Shown: positions 29,812 through 46,141 of the stretch, in pieces | Position numbering within the stretch: the stretch's first letter is position 1 | How the letters are laid out: each line of letters opens with the position of its first letter | Assembly: GCA_002269645.1 (NCBI GenBank) | Contig: NIVC01000690.1 | Coordinates: forward strand, 62,001-126,000 | Length of the DNA: 64,000 bases | Reading direction: 5' to 3' | DNA from: Macrostomum lignano | Lineage: Eukaryota | Position numbers and translations under genes: made by a program | Notes under the pieces: generated by a model | What the model was told of the DNA's origin: nothing | The model's database searches: none | Seen by the model: the letters and a program-made list of their open reading frames with translations, nothing else

Positions 29812-30836
29812 GTAATTGATGAGAAACATCATAATCTAGGCACAGAAGCATGAGTAACTGATGAGAAACATGAGAATCTAGGCACAGAAGCATGAGTAAC
29901 TGATGAGAAACATCAGAATCTAGGCACAGAAGCATGAGTAACTGATGAGAAACATCAGAATCTAGGCACAGAAGCATGAGTAAGTGATGAGAAACATCAG
30001 AATCTAGGCACAGAAGCATGAGTAACTGATGAGAAACATGAGAATCTAGGCACAGAAGCATGAGTAACTGATGAGAAACATCAGAATCTAGGCACAGAAG
30101 CATGAGTAACTGATGAGAAACATGAGAATCTAAGTACAGAAGCATAAGTAAGTGATGAGAAACATCAGAATCTAGGCACAGAAGCATGAGTAACTGATGA
30201 GAAACATGAGAATCTAGGCACAGAAGCATGAGTAAGTGATGAGAAACATCAGAATCTAGGCACAGAAGCATGAGTAAGTGATGAGAAACATCAGAATCTA
30301 GGCACAGAAGCATGAGTAAGTGATGAGAAACATCAGAATCTAGGCACAGAAGCATGAGTAACTGATGAGAAACATGAGAATCTAGGCACAGAAGCATGAG
30401 TAAGTGATGAGAAACATCAGAATCTAGGCACAGAAGCATGAGTAACTGATGAGAAACATGAGAATCTAGGCACAGAAGCATGAGTAAGTGATGAGAAACA
30501 TCAGAATCTAGGCACAGAAGCATGAGTAAGTGATGAGAAACATGAGAATCTAAGTACAGAAGCATGAGTAACTGATGAGAAACATGAGAATCTAAGTACA
30601 GAAGCATGAGTAACTGATGAGAAACATGAGAATCTAAGTACAGAAGCATGAGTAACTGATGAGAAACATGAGAATCTAAGTACAGAAGCATGAGTAACTG
30701 ATGAGAAACATGAGAATCTAAGTACAGAAGCATGAGTAACTGATGAGAAACATGAGAATCTAAGTACAGATGCATTGCTAATTGATGAGAAACATCAGAA
30801 TCTAGGCACAGAAGCATGAGTAATTGATGAGAAACT
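29812..30836. repeat. 42-bp minisatellite (GAATCTAGGCACAGAAGCATGAGTAACTGATGAGAAACATCA), about 24 copies
   Basis: Tandem array; source of the 14-aa-period ORF on the minus strand. Confidence 0.95.
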
Positions 30837-31365
30837 AGAGAAACTATAGGCCGAGAAGCGTTAGTAATTTATAAATAATGAGGTACAAACACTGCAGGAG
30901 TCACAGTTTTAGTTTTTTTGCGTTTTTTTTAATTTGCAATTAGCATTAAAATTTAAGTTTCAATTGAATGCCAGGCCGGCTACATATACCTGACTGCATA
31001 AAATAGAACCGTTTGTTAAATGTGGCAGCCAGTGTAATATATAGCAGAATCGTTCCATTTCTCTTCAAATTGCTGAGTAACCCTCCGTCCATGACAAGAA
31101 AGTCAACTACTGGTCTTCGAGTATTAGACTGTGCATCCTAATCTATATAGCATATTATATCTTATCGCACTCTTAAGAAGCGAACTAGTTTGCAAATTTT
31201 TCTTTAAAATAAAACTGCGCCTTGCAAGCAGAGGCCAGATCGAACTTGAAGAAGATTTCATTATACCTTAGAATACGTTCGACCCAAAGAACCCAATATA
31301 GTGCCTTAATTAATAATAATATCAGTATTAGTCTCTATATAAAGTTCTACAGTTAAGAAAGCAGA

Positions 31366-34300
31366 ATGGACAGCAGTTCAGTACAGACATTAGGCGCTGG
31401 TGCAGCAGCCGTGCTGGTTGGCACTCTGTTTTATCGTTGGCTGTCATATCCCAGCAGACAGTTCGGCCCGACGCCTCTGCTAAGTGTGCTTGAGGATCGG
31501 CAACAGTCCAGGTTGCTTTCGGTAAGGTGTTTCGCAATTTGTTGTGTTTGTTCTTCTCAGTTACATTTATAAGCGTTTTATTTTAATTATTGATTTTAGG
31601 ATGCTGTCAGTGTCTTGGGCACGCAGTGACGGGCACACATTCCGTTAAAATCGGAGTTAAGCAGTTTTTAAATAGTTTTTTAACCTATCTTGTTGATAAA
31701 TAAGCGTTTGTGATGCTTTGGGAATCTGATCGCTTGGGGTTGGGAGTGTAATATCTTTGGAATGCAAAGTCTTGGGAATGTAATGTCTTTAAGAATGCGA
31801 TGTCTCGAAAATGTGACGCTTTTGGAATATGGATAATGTCTACGAGTATAATGTCATAAGAATGTGATGTCTTGTTAAAGTGACTTCGTATAGGAATGTA
31901 ATGTCTAAAGCCTGACAACACAAACATTGCATCATAACTGAACCATGTGAGGGTTTTACGACTGGGGTGTTTTGTGAATTTGAAGTTTTTTTAGATTGGG
32001 AATGTTTATGTAATGTTTTGGATGTGATATCTTAAAATGTTGCGCTAATTATTGCTTGAGCAAATTTTCATTATGATTTGGCAAATAGCTGTCGTGGTTT
32101 TCACAGAAGACACAATTATGTTGATGTGGTTCATGGAACGGAATTAAAAAAATTGAATTAACTACATGGAGCTTCTGTCTGATCTCAGCCTTGACATTTC
32201 AGCAATCCCCCCGTAAGCCTAGATATCTCAGCAATCCCTCCGTAAGCCTTGACAGCACAGCAACCCCCCCCCCCCGAAAGTCTTGATATCTCAGCAGTTC
32301 CCCCGTAAGCCTTGACATCTCAGCAACCCCCCCCCCCCGAAAGTCTTGATATCTCAGCAGTCCCCCCCCCTGTAAGCCTTGACATCTCAGCAACCCCCCC
32401 CCCCGAAAGTCTTGATATCTCAGCAGTCCCCCCCCTGTAAGCCTTGACATCTCAGCAACCCCCCCCCCCGAAAGTCTTGATATCTCAGCAGTCCCCCCCC
32501 CCCTGTAAGCCTTGACATCTCAGCAACCCCCCCCCCGAAAGTCTTGATATCTCAGCAGTCCCCCCCCCCTGTAAGCCTTGACATCTCAGGAATCCCCCCG
32601 TATTCTCAGTTGCAAAATTTCGGTCAGAAGCACAGTATCTTATTTCAGACTGCCCCGCCCCGTCACAGAATGCATGCCATGAACAAAACAGTAGCTATCT
32701 TTTGCAATTGCAATGTTCGTAAAACTTAGAAGCACTCAGACAAGTTTTGCTGGGCGTGGGCATGGGCACTTCTTTCTATTTTACGAGTACTTTCCTACGT
32801 TTAGCCATCAGCGCTCGTTGTTTTCAGTGCTGGGAAATCTTTTTTCCAAGTAATTTTTGCAGATCATTTCTCTACAATCGTTTTACTTCTTTCTTTAGCT
32901 TCCGAAACAAATGCGCTTCGTTTTTAAAAGCTTCTAGAAAAGTAGTCGTAGACAAGAAAAAAGAGAGAAGAGAAGCCGTATTTTCTTACTCTCAGGTCAG
33001 GACCAAGCTACCAGGCCGGACTCGCTTCCATTAAACAATTTAGCAGCCACTGGTTTCGAGTCTACGACATTCGTTTCATTTTTTGGCTGTGTTGAGGAGG
33101 CCACGGCGCAAGCGGTTTGGGTGAGGTCTGAGGGTGCAGAGCTTGGGGTGGGTGGGGTGGGGGTTGTGCGTGCCCTGTGGGGGGGGGGTTGTGCGTGCCC
33201 TGTGGGGGGGGGGTTGTGCGTGCGCTGCGGGGGTGAGGCGCTGCGGGGCGCGGCGGAGTCTAAAACTAAAACCAGAACTAAATAAAGGCTGACGTAGACA
33301 AAATCTGGTAAGGGCCAGATTTGGAAAGACTTGGATGTACATCCACGCTTTGCTAGAGTGTACATTGGCTTTATTTATCTGGGATAGAGGGAGAGAGATG
33401 TGAATGAACAGTGTTGTAGAACGATAAATAGCAGCAGCCCTTATTCTACGAACTTGCTTAACATTTTCACCCCCTCTCTAGAGGCTCGCCCTCTATATTA
33501 ATTGTTCAGTAATTTAACAACAGCTTTAATTTTTTTAAAACCAAACGAACAAAAGATTCTTCCACTAAAGTCTATACTAATATACTGATAAATGGGTAAT
33601 CAAAGTTCAACAGGACAATATTCTCCCAGCGGAGATGGAAATAACAATAAGTCTGGAACAATGCGCCAATCCAAGTCTGGCACATTGGTATTTACACGTT
33701 ACGAAACTCAATCTACTCTCTTACCTGTAAGTACTTTAGTATAATATATAATATGCCTTTAATCTAAATGTAAATGAAAGCTCTAGTTAATAATACGCGT
33801 AGGTCAAGTCTGAAAACTGAACTGAAAGAGACCATTTATTCTCGCGAGTCTTGATTCTTATCTCTGCGCTTTAGTTTGAAGTTCGAATTCAAAACGGCCG
33901 AACTAAATATGATTAGACCTTATGCGCACATATATACTATAGGCATAAGTGACGTGCGTGCCTCTAATTTTAGAATGAGCTACAACTACAACTACAACTA
34001 GCTAAAGGTCAAAAGTTACGTTAAAAGTCTTGAAATATTGCCAAGTCACGACTGAGGGACCAGCAGAGCAGATTAGTCATTAAAAAATCCAAATGAACAA
34101 AACATGCATTCTGGTTCTGGCACTGGCACTAGCCATCTATCGTAAATATCTACTTATTATGCTAAAAATAGACCTTATAGCGTAACTAACTTTTATTTAT
34201 AACAAATGCAAATTTTCTAACGCGAAACCAAAACTCGTACTATTTAAGCAACAGCCCAAGAGTGACTTAGTAATAGCGCCATCATGTGACTTTTCTTATG

Positions 34301-37300
34301 CATTCCAGCACACTACAGGTTTCTATTGTATGATGTTTTTATTTATAAATTATAACAGCTTGGGTTGTAGGCAAAATGGGTTTTGAAAAGCATGATATAC
34401 AAATTTGTTGATGTCACATGATATTCTGCAAGGAGTGAGACTCTCTGAGGGGTGAGATTCTAGAGCCTCTTAGGGGTGAGATTCTAGAGCCGCTTGTCTC
34501 TTTTAGGGGTGAGATTCTGGGGCCGCTTGTCTCTTTTAGGGGTGAGATTCTGGGGCCGCTTGTCTCTCTTGGGGTGAGATTCTGGGGTCGCTTGTTTCTG
34601 TTAGGGGTGAGATTCTGGGGCCGCTTGTCTCTCTGAGGGGTGAGATTCTAGAGCCGCTTGTCTCTTTTAGGGGTGAGATTCTAGAGCCGCTTGTCTCTTT
34701 TAGGGGTGAGATTCTAGAGCCGCTTGTCTCTTTTAGGGGTGAGATTCTAGAGCCGCTTGTCTCTTTTAGGGGTGAGATTCTGGGGCCGCTTGTCTCTGTT
34801 AGGGGTGAGATTCTAGAGCCGCTTGTCTCTTTTAGGGGTGAGATTCTGGGGCCGCTTGTCTCTGTTAGGGGTGAGATTCTGGGGCCGCTTGTCTCTGAGG
34901 GGTGAGATTCTAGAGCCGGTTTTTTTAGGGTGAGATTCTAGGGCCGCTTCTCTCTCTAAGTGGTGAGATTCGTAAACTCGTGAGAGTCTATATATTCTGT
35001 TTTTTCATGCCCAACAAACTGTAAAGTCCGCTTTATACTACTCACAAGCTACTCGCACTCACTCACCCACCTGTTCAGGACGGCTCTCGATGCTGGCCAT
35101 TCTCGGACTCGACCGAGATTATCGAGTACTGCTACGAAGAGGCCAAAACTTTGCACGACGGGTTCCTTCGCGGCATCCGCCAGTCGAAAAATGGACCCTG
35201 CTTGGGTACTCGGGTTGGCGAAGGCCCATACGAGTGGCTGACCTACCAGCAGGTGTATGATCAGGCTAGGGAGCTGGGCAGCGCGCTGACAGGTCGGCTG
35301 GGCTTGTCTCGCGGTGAATTTGTTGGAGTCTATTCGCAAAACCGAGCTGAATGGGTGCTGACTGAAGTGGCTTGCAATCAGTTCTCACTGGTGCTCGTGC
35401 CGCTGTATGACACCCTGGGCACTGAGGCGTGCAGTCACATCCTCAGCCAGACCAGCTCGAGTGTTGTTGTTGTCGACTCAGAAGCCAAGGCTAGGAATCT
35501 GTTGCAGTGCAAAGCTGAGGCGCCATCGTTTCGACATGTGGTGCTGATGGGGATTGACTCCCCTAAACCGGAGCTGGTCAAAGAGGCTCAGGAGGCTGGG
35601 GTGGAGCTGCACGCTTGGTCTGAGCTTGTGAGCTGGGGTAGAGAGAATCTCGCCGAGGTGAACCCGCCTGCGCCTGACGATTTGGCTACTCTGTGCTACA
35701 CTAGCGGCACTACTGGTGAGCTTGTCTACCGATATGTATCGCTTAATTCATGTATTCGTGTATTAATCATGCGTTGACTAATCATGATTATCACTCAAAT
35801 TTAAAACTCTCACAAACTCGAAAGTTCACTCAAACTCGAAGCTTCACTCAAACTCGAAGCTTCACTCAAACTCTAAGCTTCACTCAAACTCGAAGCTTCA
35901 CTCAAACTCGAAGCTTCACTCAAACTCAAAGCTTCACTCAAACTCAAAGCTTCACTCAAACTCAAAGCTTCACTCAAACTCGAAGCTTCACTCAAACTCG
36001 AAGCTTCACTCAAACTCAAAGCTTCACTCAAACTCAAAGCTTCACTCAAACTCAAAGCTTCACTCAAACTCGAAGCTTCACTCAAACTCGAAGCTTTACT
36101 CAAACTTAAAGCTTTCACTTAAACTCGAAGCTCCACTCAAACTCGAAGCTTCACTCAAACTCGAAGCTTAACTCAAACTCGAAGCTTCACTCAAACTCGA
36201 AGCTTCACTCAAACTCGAAGCTTCACTCAAACTCGAAGCTTCACTCAAACTCAAAGCTTCACTCAAACTCGAAGCTTCACTCAAACTCGAAGCTTCACTC
36301 AAACTCAAAGCTTCACTCAAACTCAAAGCTTCACTCAAACTCAAAGCTTCACTCAAACTCGAAGCTTCACTCAAACTTAAAGCTCCACTCAAACTCAAAG
36401 CTTCACTCAAACTCAAAGCTTCACTCAAACTCGAAGCTTCACTCAAACTCGAAGCTTTACTCAAACTTAAAGCTTTCACTTAAACTCGAAGCTCCACTCA
36501 AACTCGAAGCTTCACTCAAACTCGAAGCTTAACTCAAACTCGAAGCTTCACTCAAACTCGAAGCTTCACTCAAACTCGAAGCTTTACTCAAACTTAAAGC
36601 TTTCACTTAAACTCGAAGCTTCACTCAAACTCGAAGCTTAACTCAAACTCGAAGCTTCACTCAAACTCAAAGCTCCACTCAAACTCAAAGCTTCACTCAA
36701 ACTCAAAGCTTCACTCAAACTCAAAGCTTCACTCAAACTCAAAGCTCCACTCAAACTCAAAGCTTCACTCAAACTCAAAGCTCCACTCAAACTCAAAGCT
36801 TCACTCAAACTCAAAGCTTCACTCAAACTCAAAGCTTCACTCAAACTCGAAGCTTCACTCAAACTCGAAGCTTCACTCAAACTCAAAGCTTCACTCAAAC
36901 TCAAAGCTTCACTCAAACTCGAAGCTTCACTCAAACTCGAAGCTTTACTCAAACTTAAAGCTTTCACTTAAACTCAAAGCTTCACTCAAACTCGAAGCTT
37001 CACTCAAACTCGAAGCTTTACTCAAACTTAAAGCTTTCACTCAAACTCGAAGCTTCACTCAAACTCGAAGCTTCACTCAAACTCGAAGCTTTCACACAAA
37101 CTCGAAGCTTCACTCAAACTCGAAGCTTTACTCAAACTTAAAGCTTTCACTCAAACTCAAAGCTTCACTCAAACTCAAAGCTTCACTCAAACTCGAAGCT
37201 TCACTCAAACTCGAAGCTTCACTCAAACTCGAAGCTTCACTCAAACTCGAAGCTTTACTCAAACTCGAAGCTTTACTCAAACTCGAAGCTTCACTCAAAC

Positions 37301-40300
37301 TCGAAGCTTAACTCAAACTCGAAGCTTCACTCAAACTCGAAGCTTCACTCAAACTCGAAGCTTCACTCAAACTCGAAGCTTCACTCAAACTCGAAGCTTC
37401 ACTCAAACTCGAAGCTTCACTCAAACTCGAAGCTTCACTCAAACTCGAAGCTTCACTCAAACTCGAAGCTTCACTCAAACTCGAAGCTTCACTCAAACTC
37501 GAAGCTTCACTCAAACTCGAAGCTTCACTCAAACTAGAAGCTTCACTCAAACTCGAAGCTTCACTCAAACTCGAAGCTTCACTCAAACTCGAAGCTTCAC
37601 TCAAACTCGAAGCTTCACTCAAACTCGAAGCTTCACTCAAACTCGAAGCTTCACTCAAACTAGAAGCTTCACTCAAACTCGAAGCTTCACTCAAACTCGA
37701 AGCTTCACTCAAACTCGAAGCTTTACTCAAACTCAATTCTCTCTTAAGTTTCTATGGCGCTATCCTATTTATTTTTGATATTTTTCTATTTATTTTTATC
37801 TTGAAATTTCTATAACTTGCATAAGTAAATAGATGAATTATGACTTCAATTGTGTTCTCCAGGTGTACCCAAGGGTGTGCAGCTCACGCACAAGAATATA
37901 ATGAGCAACATGGCTGGCGTGTACAGTGTGCTGCTGTTAGACCAGAAGAGCAACGCTAATCAGGTGAGGCCTGCTTGCTTTTTACCTGTGATGAGTTTTA
38001 GCCATCAAAACTAATATGGATAATTTGTGATTATAGTAGTTTTAGTGTCTGTAGCTGTGATATTTTAATATATTTGTATCGTGTTCTCACTACTTGGGTT
38101 GGGATACTGATGGAGTCTTATCTCTAGGGGTGAGATACTGATGGAGTCTTATCTCTAGGGGTGAGATACTGATGGAGTCTTATCTCTAGGAGTGAGATAC
38201 TGATTGAGTCTTATCTCTAGGAGTGAGATACTGATAGAGTCTCATCTCTAGGGGTGAGATACTGATGGAGTCTTATCTCTAGGAGTGAGATACTGATTGA
38301 GTCTTATCTCTAGGAGTGAGATACTGATAGAGTCTCATCTCTAGGGGTGAGATACTGATGGAGTCTTATCTCTAGGAGTGAGATACTGATTGAGTTTTAT
38401 CTCTAGGAGTGAGATACTGATGGAGTCTTATCTCTAGGAGTGAGATACTGATTGAGTCTTATCTCTAGGAGTGAGATACTGATAGAGTCTCATATCTAGG
38501 GGTGAGATACTGATGGAGTCTTATCTCTAGGAGTGAGATACTGATAGAGTCTCATATCTAGGGGTGATACTGATGGAGTCTTATCTCTAGGGGTGAGATA
38601 CTGATGGGGTCTTATCTCTAGGAGTGAGATACTGATGGAGTCTTATCTCTAGGAGTGAGATACTGATTGAGTCTTATCTCTAGGAGTGAGATACTGATAG
38701 AGTCTCATATCTAGGGGTGAGATACTGATGGAGTCTTATCTCTAGGGGTGAGATACTGATGGGGTCTTATCTCTAGGGGTGAGATACTGATGGAGTCTTA
38801 TCTCTAGGAGTGAGATACTGATTGAGTTTTATCTCTAGGAGTGAGATACTGATAGAGTCTCATATCTAGGGGTGAGATACTGATGGAGTCTTATCTCTAG
38901 GGGTGAGATATTGATGGGGTCTTATCTCTAGGGGTGAGATACTGATGGGGTCTTATCTCTAAAGGTGAGATACTAATGGAGTCTTATCTCTAGGGGTATA
39001 GAGGAAGAGGAGATTCTAATCTAGTCTAGTTTATCTAAGAGTGAGAGTCTTCAGTGGTCATTTGCGATACGATTTCATATTTAAATTTCATAACACGCCT
39101 AGTTATTACGGCTTCATCTAATATAAGATAATTATCGTATTAAAATAGTTGCAACCCCTCACTACTAACTGCAGCAGGTCCTGCCGCCTCTGACGCCGGA
39201 AGACACCTACCTGTCTTACCTGCCCCTGGCGCACATGTTTGAGCGTTGCGCAATCACCATGTGCTTCCTCAACGGCATGCGTGTCGGGTTCTTCCGCGGC
39301 GACGTTCGCCAGCTGATGGAGGACATGCAGGCTCTGCGGCCAACCCTGTTCTGCACCGTGCCGCGGCTGCTCAACCGCATGTACGACCGGGTGCTCGCTG
39401 GCGTCTCCGGCAGCGTCATCAAGTCCAAGCTGCTGCAGATGGCTGTTGATAGGAAGACTCGAATGCTCGAACGTGGAATCATACGACGGGACACGATGTG
39501 GGATAAATTGGTGTTCTCTAAGGTGCACCAGCTGACTGGAGGCCGGGTCCGAGTGGTGATTACAGGTGAGAGCGGAATTGGTGCTTGATTGATCTGATAT
39601 CGATTTTTATTAGCCCGATATCGATTTTTTCACCGATATCGATTTTTATTTCACCTGTATCGATTTTTCCTAACTGGATATCGATTTTTATTAACCCGAT
39701 ATCTATTTTTAATACCTTACTATCGATTTTTTATTTCGATATCTATTTTTAATACCTTAGTATCGATTTTTTATTTCGATATCGATTTTTAATAACTTAG
39801 TATCGATTTTTTATTTCGATATCTATTTTTAATACCTTAGTATCGATTTTTTATTTCGATATCGATTTTTAATACCTTAGTATCGATTTTTTATTTCGAT
39901 ATCGATTTTTAATACCTTAGTATCGATTTTTTATTTCGATATCGATTTTTAATACCTTAGTATCGATTTTTTATTTCGATATCGATTTTTAATACCTTAG
40001 TATCGATTTTTTATTTCGATATCTATTTTTAATACCTTAGTATCGATTTTTTATTTCGATATCTATTTTTAATACCTTAGTATCGATTTTTTATTTCGAT
40101 ATTGATTTTTAGTACCTTAGTATCGATTTTTTATTTCGATTTCGATTTTTAGTACCTTAGTATCGATTTTTTATTTCGATTTCGATTTTAAAAAAAAAAC
40201 TTGATGTAGATTTCTATTAAACCTTTCTGTATTTTGGTTGGTCCAACATCGATTTGAATAAATCCGATACTAATGTTAACTGAACCAATATCAATATTAA

Positions 40301-41650
40301 TTAATCATATCGTTAATTCCATTAATCCCCGTTCAGGCTCGGCCCCCATCGGCGCCAAGGTGATGCAGTTCATCCGCGCCGCTTTCGGCTGCCCAGTATT
40401 CGAAGGCTACGGCCAGACTGAGGCCACTGCCGCCGTCACGGTCACCCTGCCCGGCGAGACCAGCCTGGGCCACGTGGGCGCCCCGGTTCCCTGCAACCAC
40501 GTCAAGCTGGTCGACGTGCCCGAGATGGGCCTGAAAGCCAGCGACGGTCGTGGCGAAGTTTGCGTCCGCGGAGCCAACGTGTTCAGCGGCTACTTCCGGA
40601 TGGACGACAAAACTGCCGAGGTGCTGGAGCCGGACAACTGGCTGCACACGGGCGACATTGGCGAGTGGACGGAGAACGGCTGCTTGAAAATCGTGGACCG
40701 TAGGAAGCATTTGTTTAAACTGGCTCAGGGCGAATACGTGGCACCTGAGAAGATTGAGCAACTCCTAAGCCGGTCTCAGTATGTGGCACAGATCTTTGTT
40801 GATGGCGACTCACTTGAGGTGATTAGATTCAACTTGAAAAGTTTATAACGATCTAAACTAAAATTTTTGCTCCTACATAATTAGTACACACGAACTTTAG
40901 AATCGTAAAGTACAAGTGTACTCCTACATAATTAGTACACACGAACTTTAGAATCGTAAAGTACAAGTGTAGTCCTACATTATTAGTACACACGAACTTA
41001 AACTCTTAAAGTACAAGTGTACTCCTACATTATTAGTACACACGAACTTTAGAATTGTATAATACAAGTGTACTCCTACATTATTAGTGCACACGAACTT
41101 TAGAATTGTATAATACAAGTGTACTCGTACATTATTAGTACTCGTACACGCGAACTTTAAAATCGTAAAGTACAAGTGTACTCCTTCCTACATTATAAGT
41201 CACGCGAACTTTAAAATCATGCTACTCGTACGTTATTAGGACATGCGCACTAAAAGTGCAAGTGCACTTTATAAAAAGCGTCAAGTACAAGCGCACTAAT
41301 GCATATTGCAGATCTACGTCTTGGGCATAGTGGTCCCTGACCCGGACGTGGTCCTGCCCTGGGCTAAGTCGCACGGCTTGCCTCAGGACCTCGAGGCCCT
41401 GTGCAAGGACCCTAACGGGCCGCTGAAACGAGCGATCCTGGAAGACCTGAACCGGATCGGCCGCGAGAACGGGCTTAAAGGCTTCGAACTGTGCAAGGAC
41501 ATCATGCTGTGCGCTGAGCAGTTCTCAGTTGAGAACGGCCTGCTAACGCCGACGTTCAAGTCGCGGCGGCCGGATCTGCGCGTGAGATTTCGCGACGACT
41601 TCAAGCGAATGTACGATGGACTCAGGGCCTCCAGCAGTGCGGCAGCTTGA
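31366..41650 (+). CDS. ACSL: Long-chain fatty acyl-CoA synthetase (ACSL1/5/6 type), 700 aa; exons 31366-31521, 35079-35715, 37863-37963, 39178-39565 (or 39175), 40337-40818, 41312-41650
   Basis: AMP-binding motif CYTSGTTG|VPKG spans intron 2. Also [25 protein letters not shown]|[45 protein letters not shown] and LLTPTFK. N-terminal TM segment in exon 1. All introns are GT-AG with consistent phases; total 2103 nt. Confidence 0.95.
32187..32600. repeat. About 30-33-bp minisatellite related to 8485-9118 (ACSL intron 1)
   Basis: Shares AGCCTTGACATCTCAGCA plus a C-run; alternates with a GTCTTGATATCTCAGCAG variant. Confidence 0.9.
33592..33726 (+). CDS. ACSL: Alternative first coding exon of ACSL encoding [45 protein letters not shown]
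   Basis: ATG 33592, 45 open codons and a perfect phase-0 donor CCT|GTAAGT at 33727, compatible with exon 2 (35079). Ends QSTLLP, echoing the exon 1a end QSRLLS. Confidence 0.7.
34435..34970. repeat. About 33-bp minisatellite (AGGGGTGAGATTCTAGAGCCGCTTGTCTCTTTT) in ACSL intron 1
   Basis: Tandem array. Confidence 0.92.
35808..37735. repeat. 18-bp minisatellite (GAAGCTTCACTCAAACTC), about 107 copies, ACSL intron 2
   Basis: Tandem array; source of the TQTRSF/EASSLS ORFs. Confidence 0.97.
38100..38998. repeat. 31-bp minisatellite (AGGGGTGAGATACTGATGGAGTCTTATCTCT), ACSL intron 3
   Basis: Tandem array. Confidence 0.95.
39597..40190. repeat. 40-bp AT-rich minisatellite (TATCGATTTTTTATTTCGATATCGATTTTTAATACCTTAG), ACSL intron 4
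   Basis: Tandem array with the internal palindrome TCGATATCGA. Confidence 0.92.
40870..41220. repeat. About 51-bp minisatellite (TCCTACATAATTAGTACACACGAACTTTAGAATCGTAAAGTACAAGTGTAC), ACSL intron 5
   Basis: About 6-7 degenerate copies. Confidence 0.85.
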
Positions 41651-42592: not shown

Positions 42593-43722
42593 GTCACTGA
42601 TCCCAGTTTCATTTGCAATGTCACTCTCCATCATTTTCACTCGCCATGTCACTGATCCCAGTTTCATTTGCAATGTCACTCTCCATCATTTTCACTCGCC
42701 ATGTCACTGATCCCCGTTTCATTCACAATGTCACTCTCCATCATTTTCACTCGCCATGTCACTGATCCCAGTTTCATTTGCAATGTCACTCTCCATCATT
42801 TTCACTCGCCATGTCACTGATCCCCGTTTCATTCACAATGTCACTCTCCATCATTTTCACTCGCCATGTCACTGATCCCAGTTTCATTTGCAATGTCACT
42901 CTCCATCATTTTCACTCGCCATGTCACTGATCCCCGTTTCATTCACAATGTCACTCTCCATCATTTTCACTCGCCATGTCACTGATCCCAGTTTCACTTG
43001 CAATGTCACTCTCTATGATTTTCACTCGCCATGACACTGATCCCAGTTTCATTTGCAATGTCACTCTCCATCATTTTCACTCGCCATGACACTGATCCCA
43101 GTTTCACTTGCAATGTCACTCTCCATCATTTTCACTCGACATGTCACTGATCCCAGTTTCATTTGCAATGTCACTCTCCATCATTTTCACTCGCCATGTC
43201 ACTGATCCCAGTTTCATTTGCAATGTCACTCTCCATCATTTTCACTCGCCATGTCACTGATCCCCGTTTCATTCGCAATGTCACTCTCCATGATTTTCAC
43301 TCGCCATGTCACTGATCCCCGTTTCATTCACAATGTCACTCTCCATCATTTTCACTCGCCATGTCACTGATCCCCGTTTCATTTGCAATGTCACTCTCCA
43401 TCATTTTCACTCGCCATGTCACTGATCCCAGTTTAATTTGCAATGTCACTCTCCATCATTTTCACTCGCCATGTCACTGATCCCAGTTTTACTTGCAATG
43501 TCACTCTCCATCATTTTTACTCGCCATGTCACTGATCCCAGTTTAATTTGCAATTTCACTCTCCATCATTTTCACTCGCCATGTCACTGATCCCAGTTTA
43601 ATTTGCAATGTCACTCTCCATCATTTTCACTCGCCATGTCACTGATCCCAGTTTAATTTGCAATGTCACTCTCCATCATTTTCACTCGCCATGTCACTGA
43701 TCCCAGTTTAATTTGCAATGTC
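42593..43722. repeat. 55-bp satellite (CACTGATCCCAGTTTCATTTGCAATGTCACTCTCCATCATTTTCACTCGCCATGT), left arm
   Basis: About 20 copies; ends at ...GCAATGTC where the LINE begins. Confidence 0.95.
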
Positions 43723-45365
43723 TGACTTGACTTACTTGACTTAGCTGCAGGGCTGTCCCGGAGGGGACACAGCGGGAAGGCGCGGGCGCCCATTCCGCTA
43801 GTCCCTGAACGGCCGACGCGTCGCTATGGACGGAGGGTTGGCGCCGCCCAGGGAGGTCCCCCAGTGTCGCCAGCAGCTATGGTGCTCTCTGGAAAGGAGA
43901 GTTCAGCCCTGCGGGTGGCCCGAAGGTAGCGCATGAGCTGATTAAAGTTTTCGGGTTTGCACGCTTCAGTAATAGAAGTGTGTGGCCCGAGGTAAGTGAG
44001 TCTGGCCCGCGTGAAGGCGGGACAGATGCTGACGAAATGCTCAGCGGTTTCGTCACCTGAGTTGCAGAAACTACAGGTGGCGTTGGTGGCGTTGCCCTGC
44101 AGGTACTGGTGCCTGGAGAAGCAGCCGTGACCAGAGAGGGTCATGGTGGCAGCCCGGATGTCTCTGCGCGAGAGGCGCAAGAGGAGCTTCCGGAGCTGGT
44201 GAGAGGGCTGAGGGACAGCGCCTCTGGATTGCCTGCAGTTCGTGCGGTTCGCCCAAGTCGAGCAGTGCTGAGTCCTGATCCACGCTTTGATGCGCGAGTC
44301 GATGACACAGCCAGGAATCGGGACAAGAGGTTCGGGGCCGAGAGAGGAGCCGGAGGCACCAACTTTTGCAAGGGTGTCAGCCAACTCATTTCCTCGGATC
44401 CCCACATGCCCCGGAACCCACTTAAGGGTAATTTTGTTGGCGGAACCCAACACATTGAGGAGTTTGATACAGTCAAGGACTGTAGCAGAGTTGGTGCTGC
44501 AGCCACTGATGGCGTGCAAGGCAGCTTGGCTGTCCGAATGGAAAATGATGTTCTTACCAGTAACGCCAGTGGCGAGAAGCTCTGCAGTGCAGGAGCTGAT
44601 GGCCAGAACTTCATTTTGGAAGACACTGGAGTTGACCCCAGTGTATTGAGCGTGGGTAGCGATGACCCTCCCGTTCAGGAAGATTCCAACACCAAAACCG
44701 GTGTTGGCTGACTGCTTAGAACCGTCGGTGTAGCAATGAAGCTCACCAGGGTTCCAATGGTCATTGATGTTATCGCGCGAGTCGATAGCTACGGAGTAGC
44801 GCTGTCTCAGGTTGAGCGTTGAGGCAATGCCATCGGTGAAGACGCGATTGGCCTGACACTCGTTGAGAAAGTTGAGGCACAGATCGCTATGCGGGACAAG
44901 GTTCCGCTTAGCAGGTGCTCTCATGTAAATGAATTTGACGCCGGCATCAATTAGACGCCGCGTCGTTCTAGCCGCCTCACCCCTGATGAAGAGGTCAAGA
45001 GGCGGAAGATTAAGGAAGGCCCCATGCCAGCAAAGGGCGTGGACCTGGTGGCGTTGCAGATGAGCCTACACGCTCTGCCTTGGATCGTGTTGAGCAGGTC
45101 TGCATGGCTTTTGACCTGGGTAGCGCTAACCCAGACAACAGAGGCGTACGTAATGGCAGGTCTAACTACGGAAGTATAGATCCACCAAAGCCGCTTTGGG
45201 GATAGACCCCAAGAAGTGCCAAGTGCTCGTCGGAGCTGGGCCAGGATGGCTGAGGCACGCTTGGCTTTTGCTTTCACGTGGAAGGACCAGTTGAGCCGGT
45301 GGTCAAGTGTGACCCCGAGACATCTGGTCTGGTGCGCGAAGGCAATATCTCTGCCGTAGAGCTGC
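43723..45365 (-). mobile_element. 5'-truncated non-LTR retrotransposon (I superfamily, LOA/Lian/R1-like) with RT C-terminus, RNase H and CCHC finger
   Basis: LGVTLDHRLNW and WGLSPKRLWWIYTSVVRPAITYASVVW (post-RT region). RNase H with intact D/E/D/D residues (YTDGSK, QNEVLAI, SDSQAAL, GNELADTLAK). CSFC...H....C finger. Stop at 43824, short 3' UTR and an (AAGTC)n-type tail at 43723-43744. One 1-nt frameshift in the run at 45020-45023. Confidence 0.93.
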
Positions 45366-46141
45366 ACTCTCCATCATTTTCACTCGCCATGTCACTGATC
45401 CCAGTTTCACTTGCAATGTCACTCTCCATCATTTTCACTCGCTATGTCACTGATCCCAGTTTCACTTGCAATGTCACTCTCCATCATTTTCACTCGCCAT
45501 GTCACTGATCCCAGTTTCACTTGCAATGTCACTCTCCATCATTTTCACTCGCCATGTCACTGATCCCAGTTTCACTTGCAATTTCACTCTCCATCATTTT
45601 CACTCGCCATGTCACTGATCCTCGTTTCATTTGCAATGTCACTCTCCATCATTTTCACTCGCCATGTCACTGATCCCAGTTTCACTTGCAATGTCACTCT
45701 CCATCATTTTTACTCGCCATGTCACTGATCCCAGTTTCACTTGCAATGTCACTCTCCATCATTTTCACTCGCCATGTCACTGATCCCAGTTTCACTTGCA
45801 ATGTCACTCTCCATCATTTTCACTCGCCATGTCACTGATCCCAGTTTCACTTGCAATGTCACTCTCCATCATTTTCACTCGCCATGTCACTGATCCCAGT
45901 TTCATTTGCAATGTCACTCTCCATCATTTTCACTCGCCATGTCACTGATCCCCGTTTCATTCACAATGTCACTCTCCATCATTTTCACTCGCCATGTCAC
46001 TGGTCCCAGTTTCATTTGCAATGTCACTCTCCATGATTTTCACTCGCCATGACACTGATCCCAGTTTCACTTGCAATGTCACTCTCCATCATTTTCACTC
46101 GACATGTCACTGATCCCAGTTTCATTTGCAATGTCACTCTC
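45366..46141. repeat. 55-bp satellite, right arm
   Basis: Resumes at ACTCTCC, in exact register with the left arm. Confidence 0.95.

Follow-up and report, generated by a model that had tools for sequence, protein, structure and literature searches.

The first intron of a long-chain fatty acyl-CoA ligase gene of Macrostomum lignano contains what is likely a genuine coding first exon, in use now or until recently, that is missing from the gene's annotation. The gene (Mlig000255.g2, of the ACSL1/5/6 type) has six coding exons and is found on the + strand of a 64,000-nucleotide stretch of DNA, ~62001-126000 of contig NIVC01000690.1 (GCA_002269645.1), which is described here as the window and to which all positions refer unless otherwise indicated. 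The annotated first exon is termed 1a and the candidate alternative, 1b. Exon 1b possesses an open reading frame (ORF), a splice donor in the phase that exon 2 needs, a tail carrying a family motif, and a beginning that fits the motif of N-myristoyltransferase (NMT), and it is preserved in paralogues of the gene. From these we infer an isoform that would be transcribed, spliced, translated, lipidated, and thereby localised differently from the annotated one.

The predicted course of events would be as follows. A transcript would start inside intron 1, whether from a promoter of its own, from a non-coding exon near 32996-33120, or through spliced-leader (SL) trans-splicing at 33509/33510. Position 33726 would then be spliced to 35079, resulting in an enzyme of 693/694 amino acids (aa) whose catalytic body is unchanged from that of the annotated isoform. 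The 45 residues of 1b would substitute a hydrophilic, probably disordered linker, starting with Met-Gly-Asn-Gln-Ser-Ser, for the transmembrane (TM) helix of 1a. The initiator Met would be removed and Gly2 N-myristoylated co-translationally, the outcome being peripheral, reversible membrane binding (one lipid, a net charge of ~+2, no palmitoylatable Cys) instead of integral anchoring, and this change of anchor would result in a different site of acyl-CoA production. That such an isoform is at once expressed, TM-less, and N-myristoylated is a joint claim towards which the balance tips, though not by much. An earlier reading of the same DNA, made from its letters alone (the sequence-only reading), had proposed just such a pair of differently targeted isoforms. 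Intrinsic evidence supports that proposal in part, i.e., donor, motif in register, upstream stop codon, three intact copies, and NMT fit, but an intron-like GC content at third codon positions (GC3) and a preponderance of nonsynonymous changes count against it.

Open frame, phase, and donor

As had been noted in the sequence-only reading, ATG GGT AAT CAA AGT TCA at 33592 opens 45 codons that extend to 33726, and these are followed by GTAAGT (Table 1). The claimed phase-0 fit to exon 2 holds as well, with a 33726-35079 join giving an uninterrupted protein and with 1a equally in frame. The predicted 1b-2 junction (33726/35079) reads CTCAATCTACTCTCTTACCT/GACGGCTCTCGATGCTGGCC and the annotated 1a-2 junction (31521/35079) reads AACAGTCCAGGTTGCTTTCG/GACGGCTCTCGATGCTGGCC, the exon 2 side being given also as GACGGCTCTCG.... 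Exon 1b in other words has what the sequence of an alternative first exon should have, that is, a start codon, an uninterrupted frame after it, and a donor whose phase is the one needed by exon 2. The exon furthermore is 'hidden', as had been said of it, in that none of the NCBI and UniProt models for the gene's three copies makes use of it.

The in-frame TAA directly preceding the 1b ATG means that this frame is not enterable from an upstream exon and therefore that 1b, if coding, is a start exon. The context of the ATG is A at -3 and G at +4. The donor agrees with the donor motif of the species, which is GT[G/A]AG (PMC8629364). ORF length on its own is uninformative here because intron 1 has many ORFs of 40-95 codons. 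GTRAGT, though, occurs just a single time in the 3557 nt of intron 1, namely as the in-phase donor of the 1b ORF. An ATG-initiated ORF of at least 45 codons that reaches an in-frame GTRAGT is seen with 3.15% of 2000 dinucleotide-preserving shuffles of intron 1. The other four introns have zero ATG ORFs running to an in-frame GTRAGT, even given a threshold of 20 codons, and the entire + strand of the window has only one other of at least 45 codons.

It is conceivable, if on the whole unlikely, that 1b is instead an unused pseudo-exon that is not found in mRNA. It would then be an intronic ORF that exists by chance, or else what is left of a former first exon, now in decay but with its QS..L tail still visible. 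The frequency within intron 1 of ORFs encoding 40-95 aa is consistent with that explanation. Against it is a joint chance of ~4e-5, which combines the ORF with its sole in-phase GTRAGT (0.03) and the motif in register (0.0014), with the NMT motif (0.009) not yet counted.

The tail motif and the start of the fold

The N-terminal parts of 117 non-Macrostomum ACSL1/5/6 homologues were aligned and the eight residues before the exon 1/2 junction examined. Counting backwards from the junction, these homologues have Q at -6 (117/117), S at -5 (111/117), V, I, or L at -2 (113/117), and P at -1 (31/117). The tail of 1b, T-Q-S-T-L-L-P, presents Q(-6), S(-5), L(-2), and P(-1) in the exact register of the family. 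Scored using a position-specific scoring matrix built from these junction columns, ETQSTLLP exceeds 99.86% of the stop-free 8-mers of the gene's introns (p ~0.0014) and likewise 99.86% of the 8-mers of the whole window as read in six frames.

The sequence-only reading had viewed the ends of 1b and 1a, ETQSTLLP and RQQSRLLS, as parallel. These ends do share a motif, but it is that of the family and not an indication of kinship between the two exons. Outside of their tails, that is, exons 1a and 1b display no DNA or protein similarity above that of shuffles, and the parallel ends thus reflect the family motif rather than recent duplication. Descent of 1b from 1a as a duplicate was also considered and rejected, there being no DNA match better than E = 0.1 and a protein local score below the shuffle mean.

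When modelled with AlphaFold2 (35-sequence alignment; mean predicted local distance difference test score, or pLDDT, of 84; predicted template modelling score of 0.75), the annotated protein has a helix at residues 5-27, which is the TM anchor, followed by unstructured residues 28-46. The first strand, residues 49-50, comes just past Q47-S48, and pLDDT climbs over this region from ~45 to 70 to 89. As modelled, the last six residues contributed by the first exon are part of the folded body. Any working first exon would therefore have to supply a QS tail, and 1b supplies QSTLLP.

The tail bears as well on whether 1b could instead open a small gene of its own, one that is nested within the intron and spliced elsewhere than to ACSL exon 2. 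Introns do harbour nested genes, and beyond this generality nothing specific points in that direction. The tail motif, however, is specific to the ACSL junction, and the sequence from 33727 to 35078, a 33-nt minisatellite in otherwise unique AT-rich DNA, has no other notable ORF. A nested gene thus seems exceedingly improbable.

Membrane helix versus myristoylation-type start

The contrast in anchors that had been drawn between the two exons is upheld, with 1a carrying a hydrophobic N-terminal segment and 1b carrying none. The Kyte-Doolittle maximum over 19 residues is 1.38 for exon 1a (residues 4-22) versus -0.29 for exon 1b, which has a mean of -1.08. The residues of 1b are predominantly S, G, N, T, and Q, with four basic residues, two acidic residues, and no Cys. 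Its start, MGNQSST, fits the NMT consensus, G-{EDRKHPFYW}-x(2)-[STAGCN]-{P}; residue 6 is Ser, and the linker that comes next is hydrophilic. The M-G-x-x-x-S myristoylation motif that the earlier reading had recognised in 1b consequently agrees with the consensus at every position, Ser6 included. Matches to this consensus follow 11 of the window's 1279 ATGs (0.86%). The predicted 1b isoform is probably a TM-less ACSL with a single myristoyl anchor plus weak positive charge, that is, a peripheral membrane binder.

Alternatively, 1b might be translated but give rise to a TM-less ACSL that is soluble or otherwise targeted, with Gly2 unmyristoylated and MGNQSS incidental. This we view as improbable. 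A G at +4 is favoured by start-codon context regardless of what the glycine does, and a second membrane signal is absent from 1b, given no Cys and just four basic versus two acidic residues. Other spiralians, moreover, have TM-less isoforms without a Met-Gly start. The ACSLs of Owenia (P0125), Lineus isoform X2 (P0135), and a Logan transcript (P0220), for example, have a short N-terminus that lacks a TM segment and contributes only the QS motif, which counts at the same time in favour of 1b as a first exon. On the other hand, all of the consensus positions including Ser6 are as NMT should require, with the hydrophilic linker behind them, and the motif, which has a chance of occurrence of ~1%, is identical in three copies of the gene.

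Paralogues, composition, and database searches

The three copies of the gene in the assembly are that of the window, L001 (Mlig017940g2), and L002 (Mlig017940g3). Exon 1b is identical between the window and L001 (135/135 nt) and differs from L002 by four substitutions and no indel (131/135 nt), with both ATG and GTAAGT retained. One of these changes is synonymous (GGA to GGT) and the others, Q26R, L32S, and T35P, are nonsynonymous and all mid-linker, leaving the first 16 and last 10 codons unchanged in all three copies. Sequence flanking 1b has indels among the copies and 1b itself has none. This freedom from indels of the ATG, frame, and donor in three copies, although the flanks have them, argues against 1b as a pseudo-exon.

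A number of other observations, nonetheless, weigh against 1b as a coding exon with a myristoylated product, the first of which come from the same comparison. Synonymous versus nonsynonymous changes relative to L002 stand at 1:3 for 1b, whereas they are 22:5 for exons 2-6 (Fisher p = 0.043). A 1:3 ratio suits a poorly constrained, disordered linker, but suits non-coding DNA equally well. Identity of 1b to L002 (97%) does not constitute a clear peak over the unique-intron background (94-96%), with window-L002 divergence, at ~5%, being too small for this paralogue comparison to decide conservation. GC3 in 1b is just 0.29 and its overall GC is 0.41, as compared with a GC3 minimum of 0.49 and mean of 0.73 for 45-codon windows of the annotated coding sequence, and the intron flanking 1b, with a GC of 0.35-0.37, is close to 1b in composition. 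Low GC3 is the strongest of the counter-points, as it would have 1b be either young or little used, or else not coding. So low a GC3 also allows for a recent de novo exonisation of intronic sequence within the Macrostomum lineage.

Searches for the 1b N-terminus elsewhere add to this side of the balance. A phmmer search of 1.84 billion 50%-identity cluster representatives, using 1b plus 20 aa as query, returned four low-complexity matches, all of them to giant repetitive proteins, and nothing homologous. A word-indexed search of 5.8 billion 90%-identity clusters, for which 1b was joined to the start of exon 2, gave no candidates, though this search also missed the species' own protein. No protein using 1b is present among the NCBI and UniProt entries for the three gene copies. 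A related species' transcript (Logan, 79% aa identity) has a 1a-type start, i.e., ...QRQSQVLP/DGSRCW, and none of the 120 nearest homologues begins with Met-Gly (0/120). No conservation of 1b beyond M. lignano was seen, either with phmmer or in the related species' transcript. Nor is there a database record of the 50-aa read-through ORF of 1b, or a match to the start of exon 2 among metagenome and metatranscriptome contigs.

It is from this set, particularly intron-like composition (GC 0.41, GC3 0.29), the 1:3 ratio with no conservation peak above intron background, and the lack of any protein with a 1b N-terminus in the two large cluster collections, that the pseudo-exon explanation draws its strength. 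Exon 1b as a coding first exon draws its own from the donor, the tail in register, the NMT motif, and the intact paralogous copies.

Possible 5' ends of a 1b transcript

The sequence-only reading had placed a non-coding exon upstream of 1b. Splice-like edges are present there (Table 1), GTGAGG included, but what is found is just a conserved, ATG-free block that has such edges. Positions 32966-33065 are identical to L002 over 100/100 nt, making this the best-conserved 100-nt block of intron 1 (background 94-96%), and neither Rfam nor tRNA scanning of intron 1, this block included, gave a match. The region of the candidate exon falls within a 424-nt stretch that lacks ATG, and the 188 nt preceding the 1b ATG are ATG-free as well (P ~0.05). 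After the conserved block there is a G-rich segment (GGGGTGGGTGGGG...; 33143-33240) with a 26-nt unit whose copy number differs among the paralogues. The conserved block could be the promoter or leader exon of a 1b transcript, or could be unrelated to it.

Closer to 1b there is an acceptor-like site whose hexamer at 33509/33510, GTTCAG, is also that at the exon 2 acceptor, and no ATG is found between 33509 and 33592. In M. lignano ~30% of genes are SL trans-spliced, with acceptor [T/C]TNCAG and with an SL that ends in ATG (PMC8629364). Trans-splicing at 33510 would set the ATG of the SL directly before a TAA, with the product reading ...TTATTGCATG/TAATTTAACAACAGC. Joining of exon 32996-33120 to 33510 would instead read CCACGGCGCAAGCGGTTTGG/TAATTTAACAACAGCTTTAA. 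As judged from these signals, the 5' end of 1b may be supplied by its own promoter, by a cis-spliced leader exon, or by SL trans-splicing, the SL route being as good as that of the leader exon.

The same acceptor could also make of 1b a 'poison' cassette exon, one which extends from near 33482/33510 to 33726 and which, inserted between 1a and exon 2, would lead to mRNA decay or re-initiation. There is indeed an acceptor-like site 82 nt upstream of the ATG, and exon 1a spliced to 33510 encounters an immediate stop (TAA). A poison exon, however, leaves without explanation the ATG context, the frame that is open all the way to the donor, the motif in register, and the NMT motif, and we hold it to be highly improbable.

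Two further observations concern the same region. The ATG of exon 1a is preceded, 13 nt upstream, by CTACAG (31347-31352), which matches [T/C]TNCAG perfectly, and by that token the annotated 1a isoform may itself be trans-spliced or possess an upstream leader exon. In addition, L002 (12628-15561, - strand) has a 3.5-kb insertion at what is window position 33401, 190 bp upstream of the 1b ATG, with GAATGAAC repeated on both sides. The insertion codes for an apparently intact, 977-aa transposase of the P-element/THAP9 type, with THAP, Tnp_P_element, TNP-like RNase H, and GBD domains.

Relation to known systems

Where an ACSL resides decides which pathway its acyl-CoA enters, and in mammals it is the N-terminal variants of ACSL4 and ACSL6 that set this location. 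With mouse Acsl6, N-terminal variants that re-target an otherwise unchanged ACSL body are established, and Kuech et al. reportedly saw ACSL4 isoenzymes with versus without a hydrophobic N-terminus localise differently. The ACSL6 long and short forms and ACSL4 variants 1 and 2 thus resemble the M. lignano case in that a single gene gives isoforms which are unlike in their N-terminus alone, via alternative start exons or transcription start sites, with the catalytic body re-targeted as a consequence. They differ from it in lacking a lipid-modification signal, whereas the M. lignano TM-less isoform has an NMT motif, as known by prediction only. With NADH-cytochrome b5 reductase (CYB5R3), alternative first exons or promoters give rise to an N-myristoylated membrane isoform and a non-lipidated isoform. 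This too is a lipid-metabolism enzyme for which the choice of first exon is a choice over N-myristoylation, but its alternative form is a soluble one and not TM-anchored, and the enzyme itself is unrelated.

A search of the literature for N-myristoylated ACSL isoforms in animals found none, the sole near case being acyl-CoA ligases of Leishmania. In Leishmania donovani, chemical proteomics detected modification by a myristate analogue of the N-terminal Gly on two fatty acyl-CoA ligases (PMC4372256). These represent a precedent for a lipidated acyl-CoA ligase N-terminus, but one from a kinetoplastid rather than a metazoan and with no alternative TM-bearing isoform. N-terminal variants of the KChIPs include forms that are cytoplasmic, N-myristoylated, or S-palmitoylated, as well as transmembrane ones (PMC3973911). 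There, alternative N-terminal exons on a common core swap a TM segment for an N-myristoyl group and localisation changes, though the family, EF-hand channel subunits, is unrelated and the classes are spread across several paralogous genes.

Should the 1b isoform be real, then reversible, NMT-dependent targeting would be added to the ACSL family as a new variant of a known theme, rather than as a new kind of system. A stronger version would have mutually exclusive first exons confer two anchoring states, integral TM and N-myristoylated peripheral, upon a metazoan ACSL1/5/6-type enzyme, with recruitment that is myristoyl-CoA dependent and which feeds back on the place of the enzyme. That version is improbable, and we infer purely that the enzyme might supply its own anchor, i.e., myristoyl-CoA. 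M. lignano is a regeneration model that is capable of transgenesis, which makes the prediction inexpensive to test. For all three copies, 1b is absent from both the Mlig_3_7 and the UniProt models. If it turns out that 1b is not expressed, then it would provide a caution that even an intronic exon which looks very convincing can be a relic.

The gene, its annotation, and its surroundings

Over 4801 bases the window and the locus of PAA78429.1 (BOX15_Mlig000255g2) show 100% identity, and the assembled full-length protein has 99% identity to Macrostomum lignano database proteins. The cluster to which the window's own protein belongs is recorded as carrying the AMP-binding domain PF00501, and TSGTTGVPKG spans the exon 2/3 junction. 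The nearest named relatives are long-chain-fatty-acid--CoA ligases 1, 5, or 6 (47-53% identity over 91-96% of length, E down to 1e-222), and these are from molluscs, annelids, nemerteans, brachiopods, and vertebrates. By its sequence the gene is of the ACSL1/5/6 type, having the AMP-binding domain, full-length relatives, and an N-terminal anchor together with the QS[VI]x[VIL] start of the fold.

Table 1. Positions, within the window, of exons, splice signals, and repeat arrays of the ACSL gene
Feature	Positions	Strand	Remarks
Exon 1a, coding part (MDSSS...RQQSRLLS, 52 codons)	31366..31521	+	phase 0, donor gtaagg; start of annotated PAA78429.1
Candidate non-coding 5' exon	32996..33120	+	acceptor-like edge ...ttcttactctcag (...ctctcag), donor GTGAGG
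Acceptor-like site TTGTTCAG	33502..33509	+	82 nt upstream of 1b ATG; pyrimidine fraction 0.70; candidate for cis or SL trans-splicing
In-frame TAA abutting 1b ATG	33589..33591	+	read from sequence
Candidate exon 1b, coding part (45 codons)	33592..33726	+	unannotated, within intron 1; MGNQSST start, S/G/N/T-rich hydrophilic linker, tail TQSTLLP
Exon 1b donor GTAAGT	33727..33732	+	phase 0; sole GTRAGT in intron 1; kept in L001 and L002
Exon 2 (DGSRCW...TSGTTG)	35079..35715	+	common to both isoforms; acceptor ttcag, GAC GGC TCT CGA TGC TGG, phase 0
Exon 3	37863..37963	+	
Exon 4	39175..39565 (alternative start 39178)	+	NAGNAG acceptor
Exon 5	40337..40818	+	
Exon 6	41312..41650	+	with TGA stop
Minisatellite arrays	29812-30846, 32207-32599, 34470-34971, 35813-37734, 38096-38997		
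Minisatellite arrays, continued	39697-40189, 40870-41218, 42593-43722, 45365-46141		

Exon 4 has a tandem acceptor (39175-39178, gcagCAG) at which the annotation uses the upstream site (...NANQQVLPP), with the downstream site losing one Gln. It is this one-residue choice that makes the 1a isoform 700/701 aa and the predicted 1b isoform 693/694 aa in length. The NCBI models of all three gene copies (n=3) begin with exon 1a. The 637-aa UniProt models of the three copies, by comparison, begin at DGSRCW, that is, without any first exon, and skip part of exon 3. The UniProt models concerned are A0A1I8HSE0, A0A1I8HV47, A0A1I8HL95, and A0A1I8I4L2, and one model, of 575 aa, begins in the wrong frame of exon 2. 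The N-termini of these models are annotation artefacts. A literature search on Mlig017940 and Mlig000255, the identifiers of the genes, turned up no paper.

Each of the ACSL gene's introns, along with both flanks, holds a minisatellite array of its own, with units of 18-63 nt and up to 106 copies. Copy numbers vary among the three paralogues, and the arrays produce long, spurious ORFs on both strands. Downstream of the gene a retrotransposon fragment (43824-45367, - strand) sits within a 55-nt minisatellite, which it splits into two arrays; this fragment consists of a 366-aa ORF with an RNase H domain plus a 138-aa ORF without a Pfam match.

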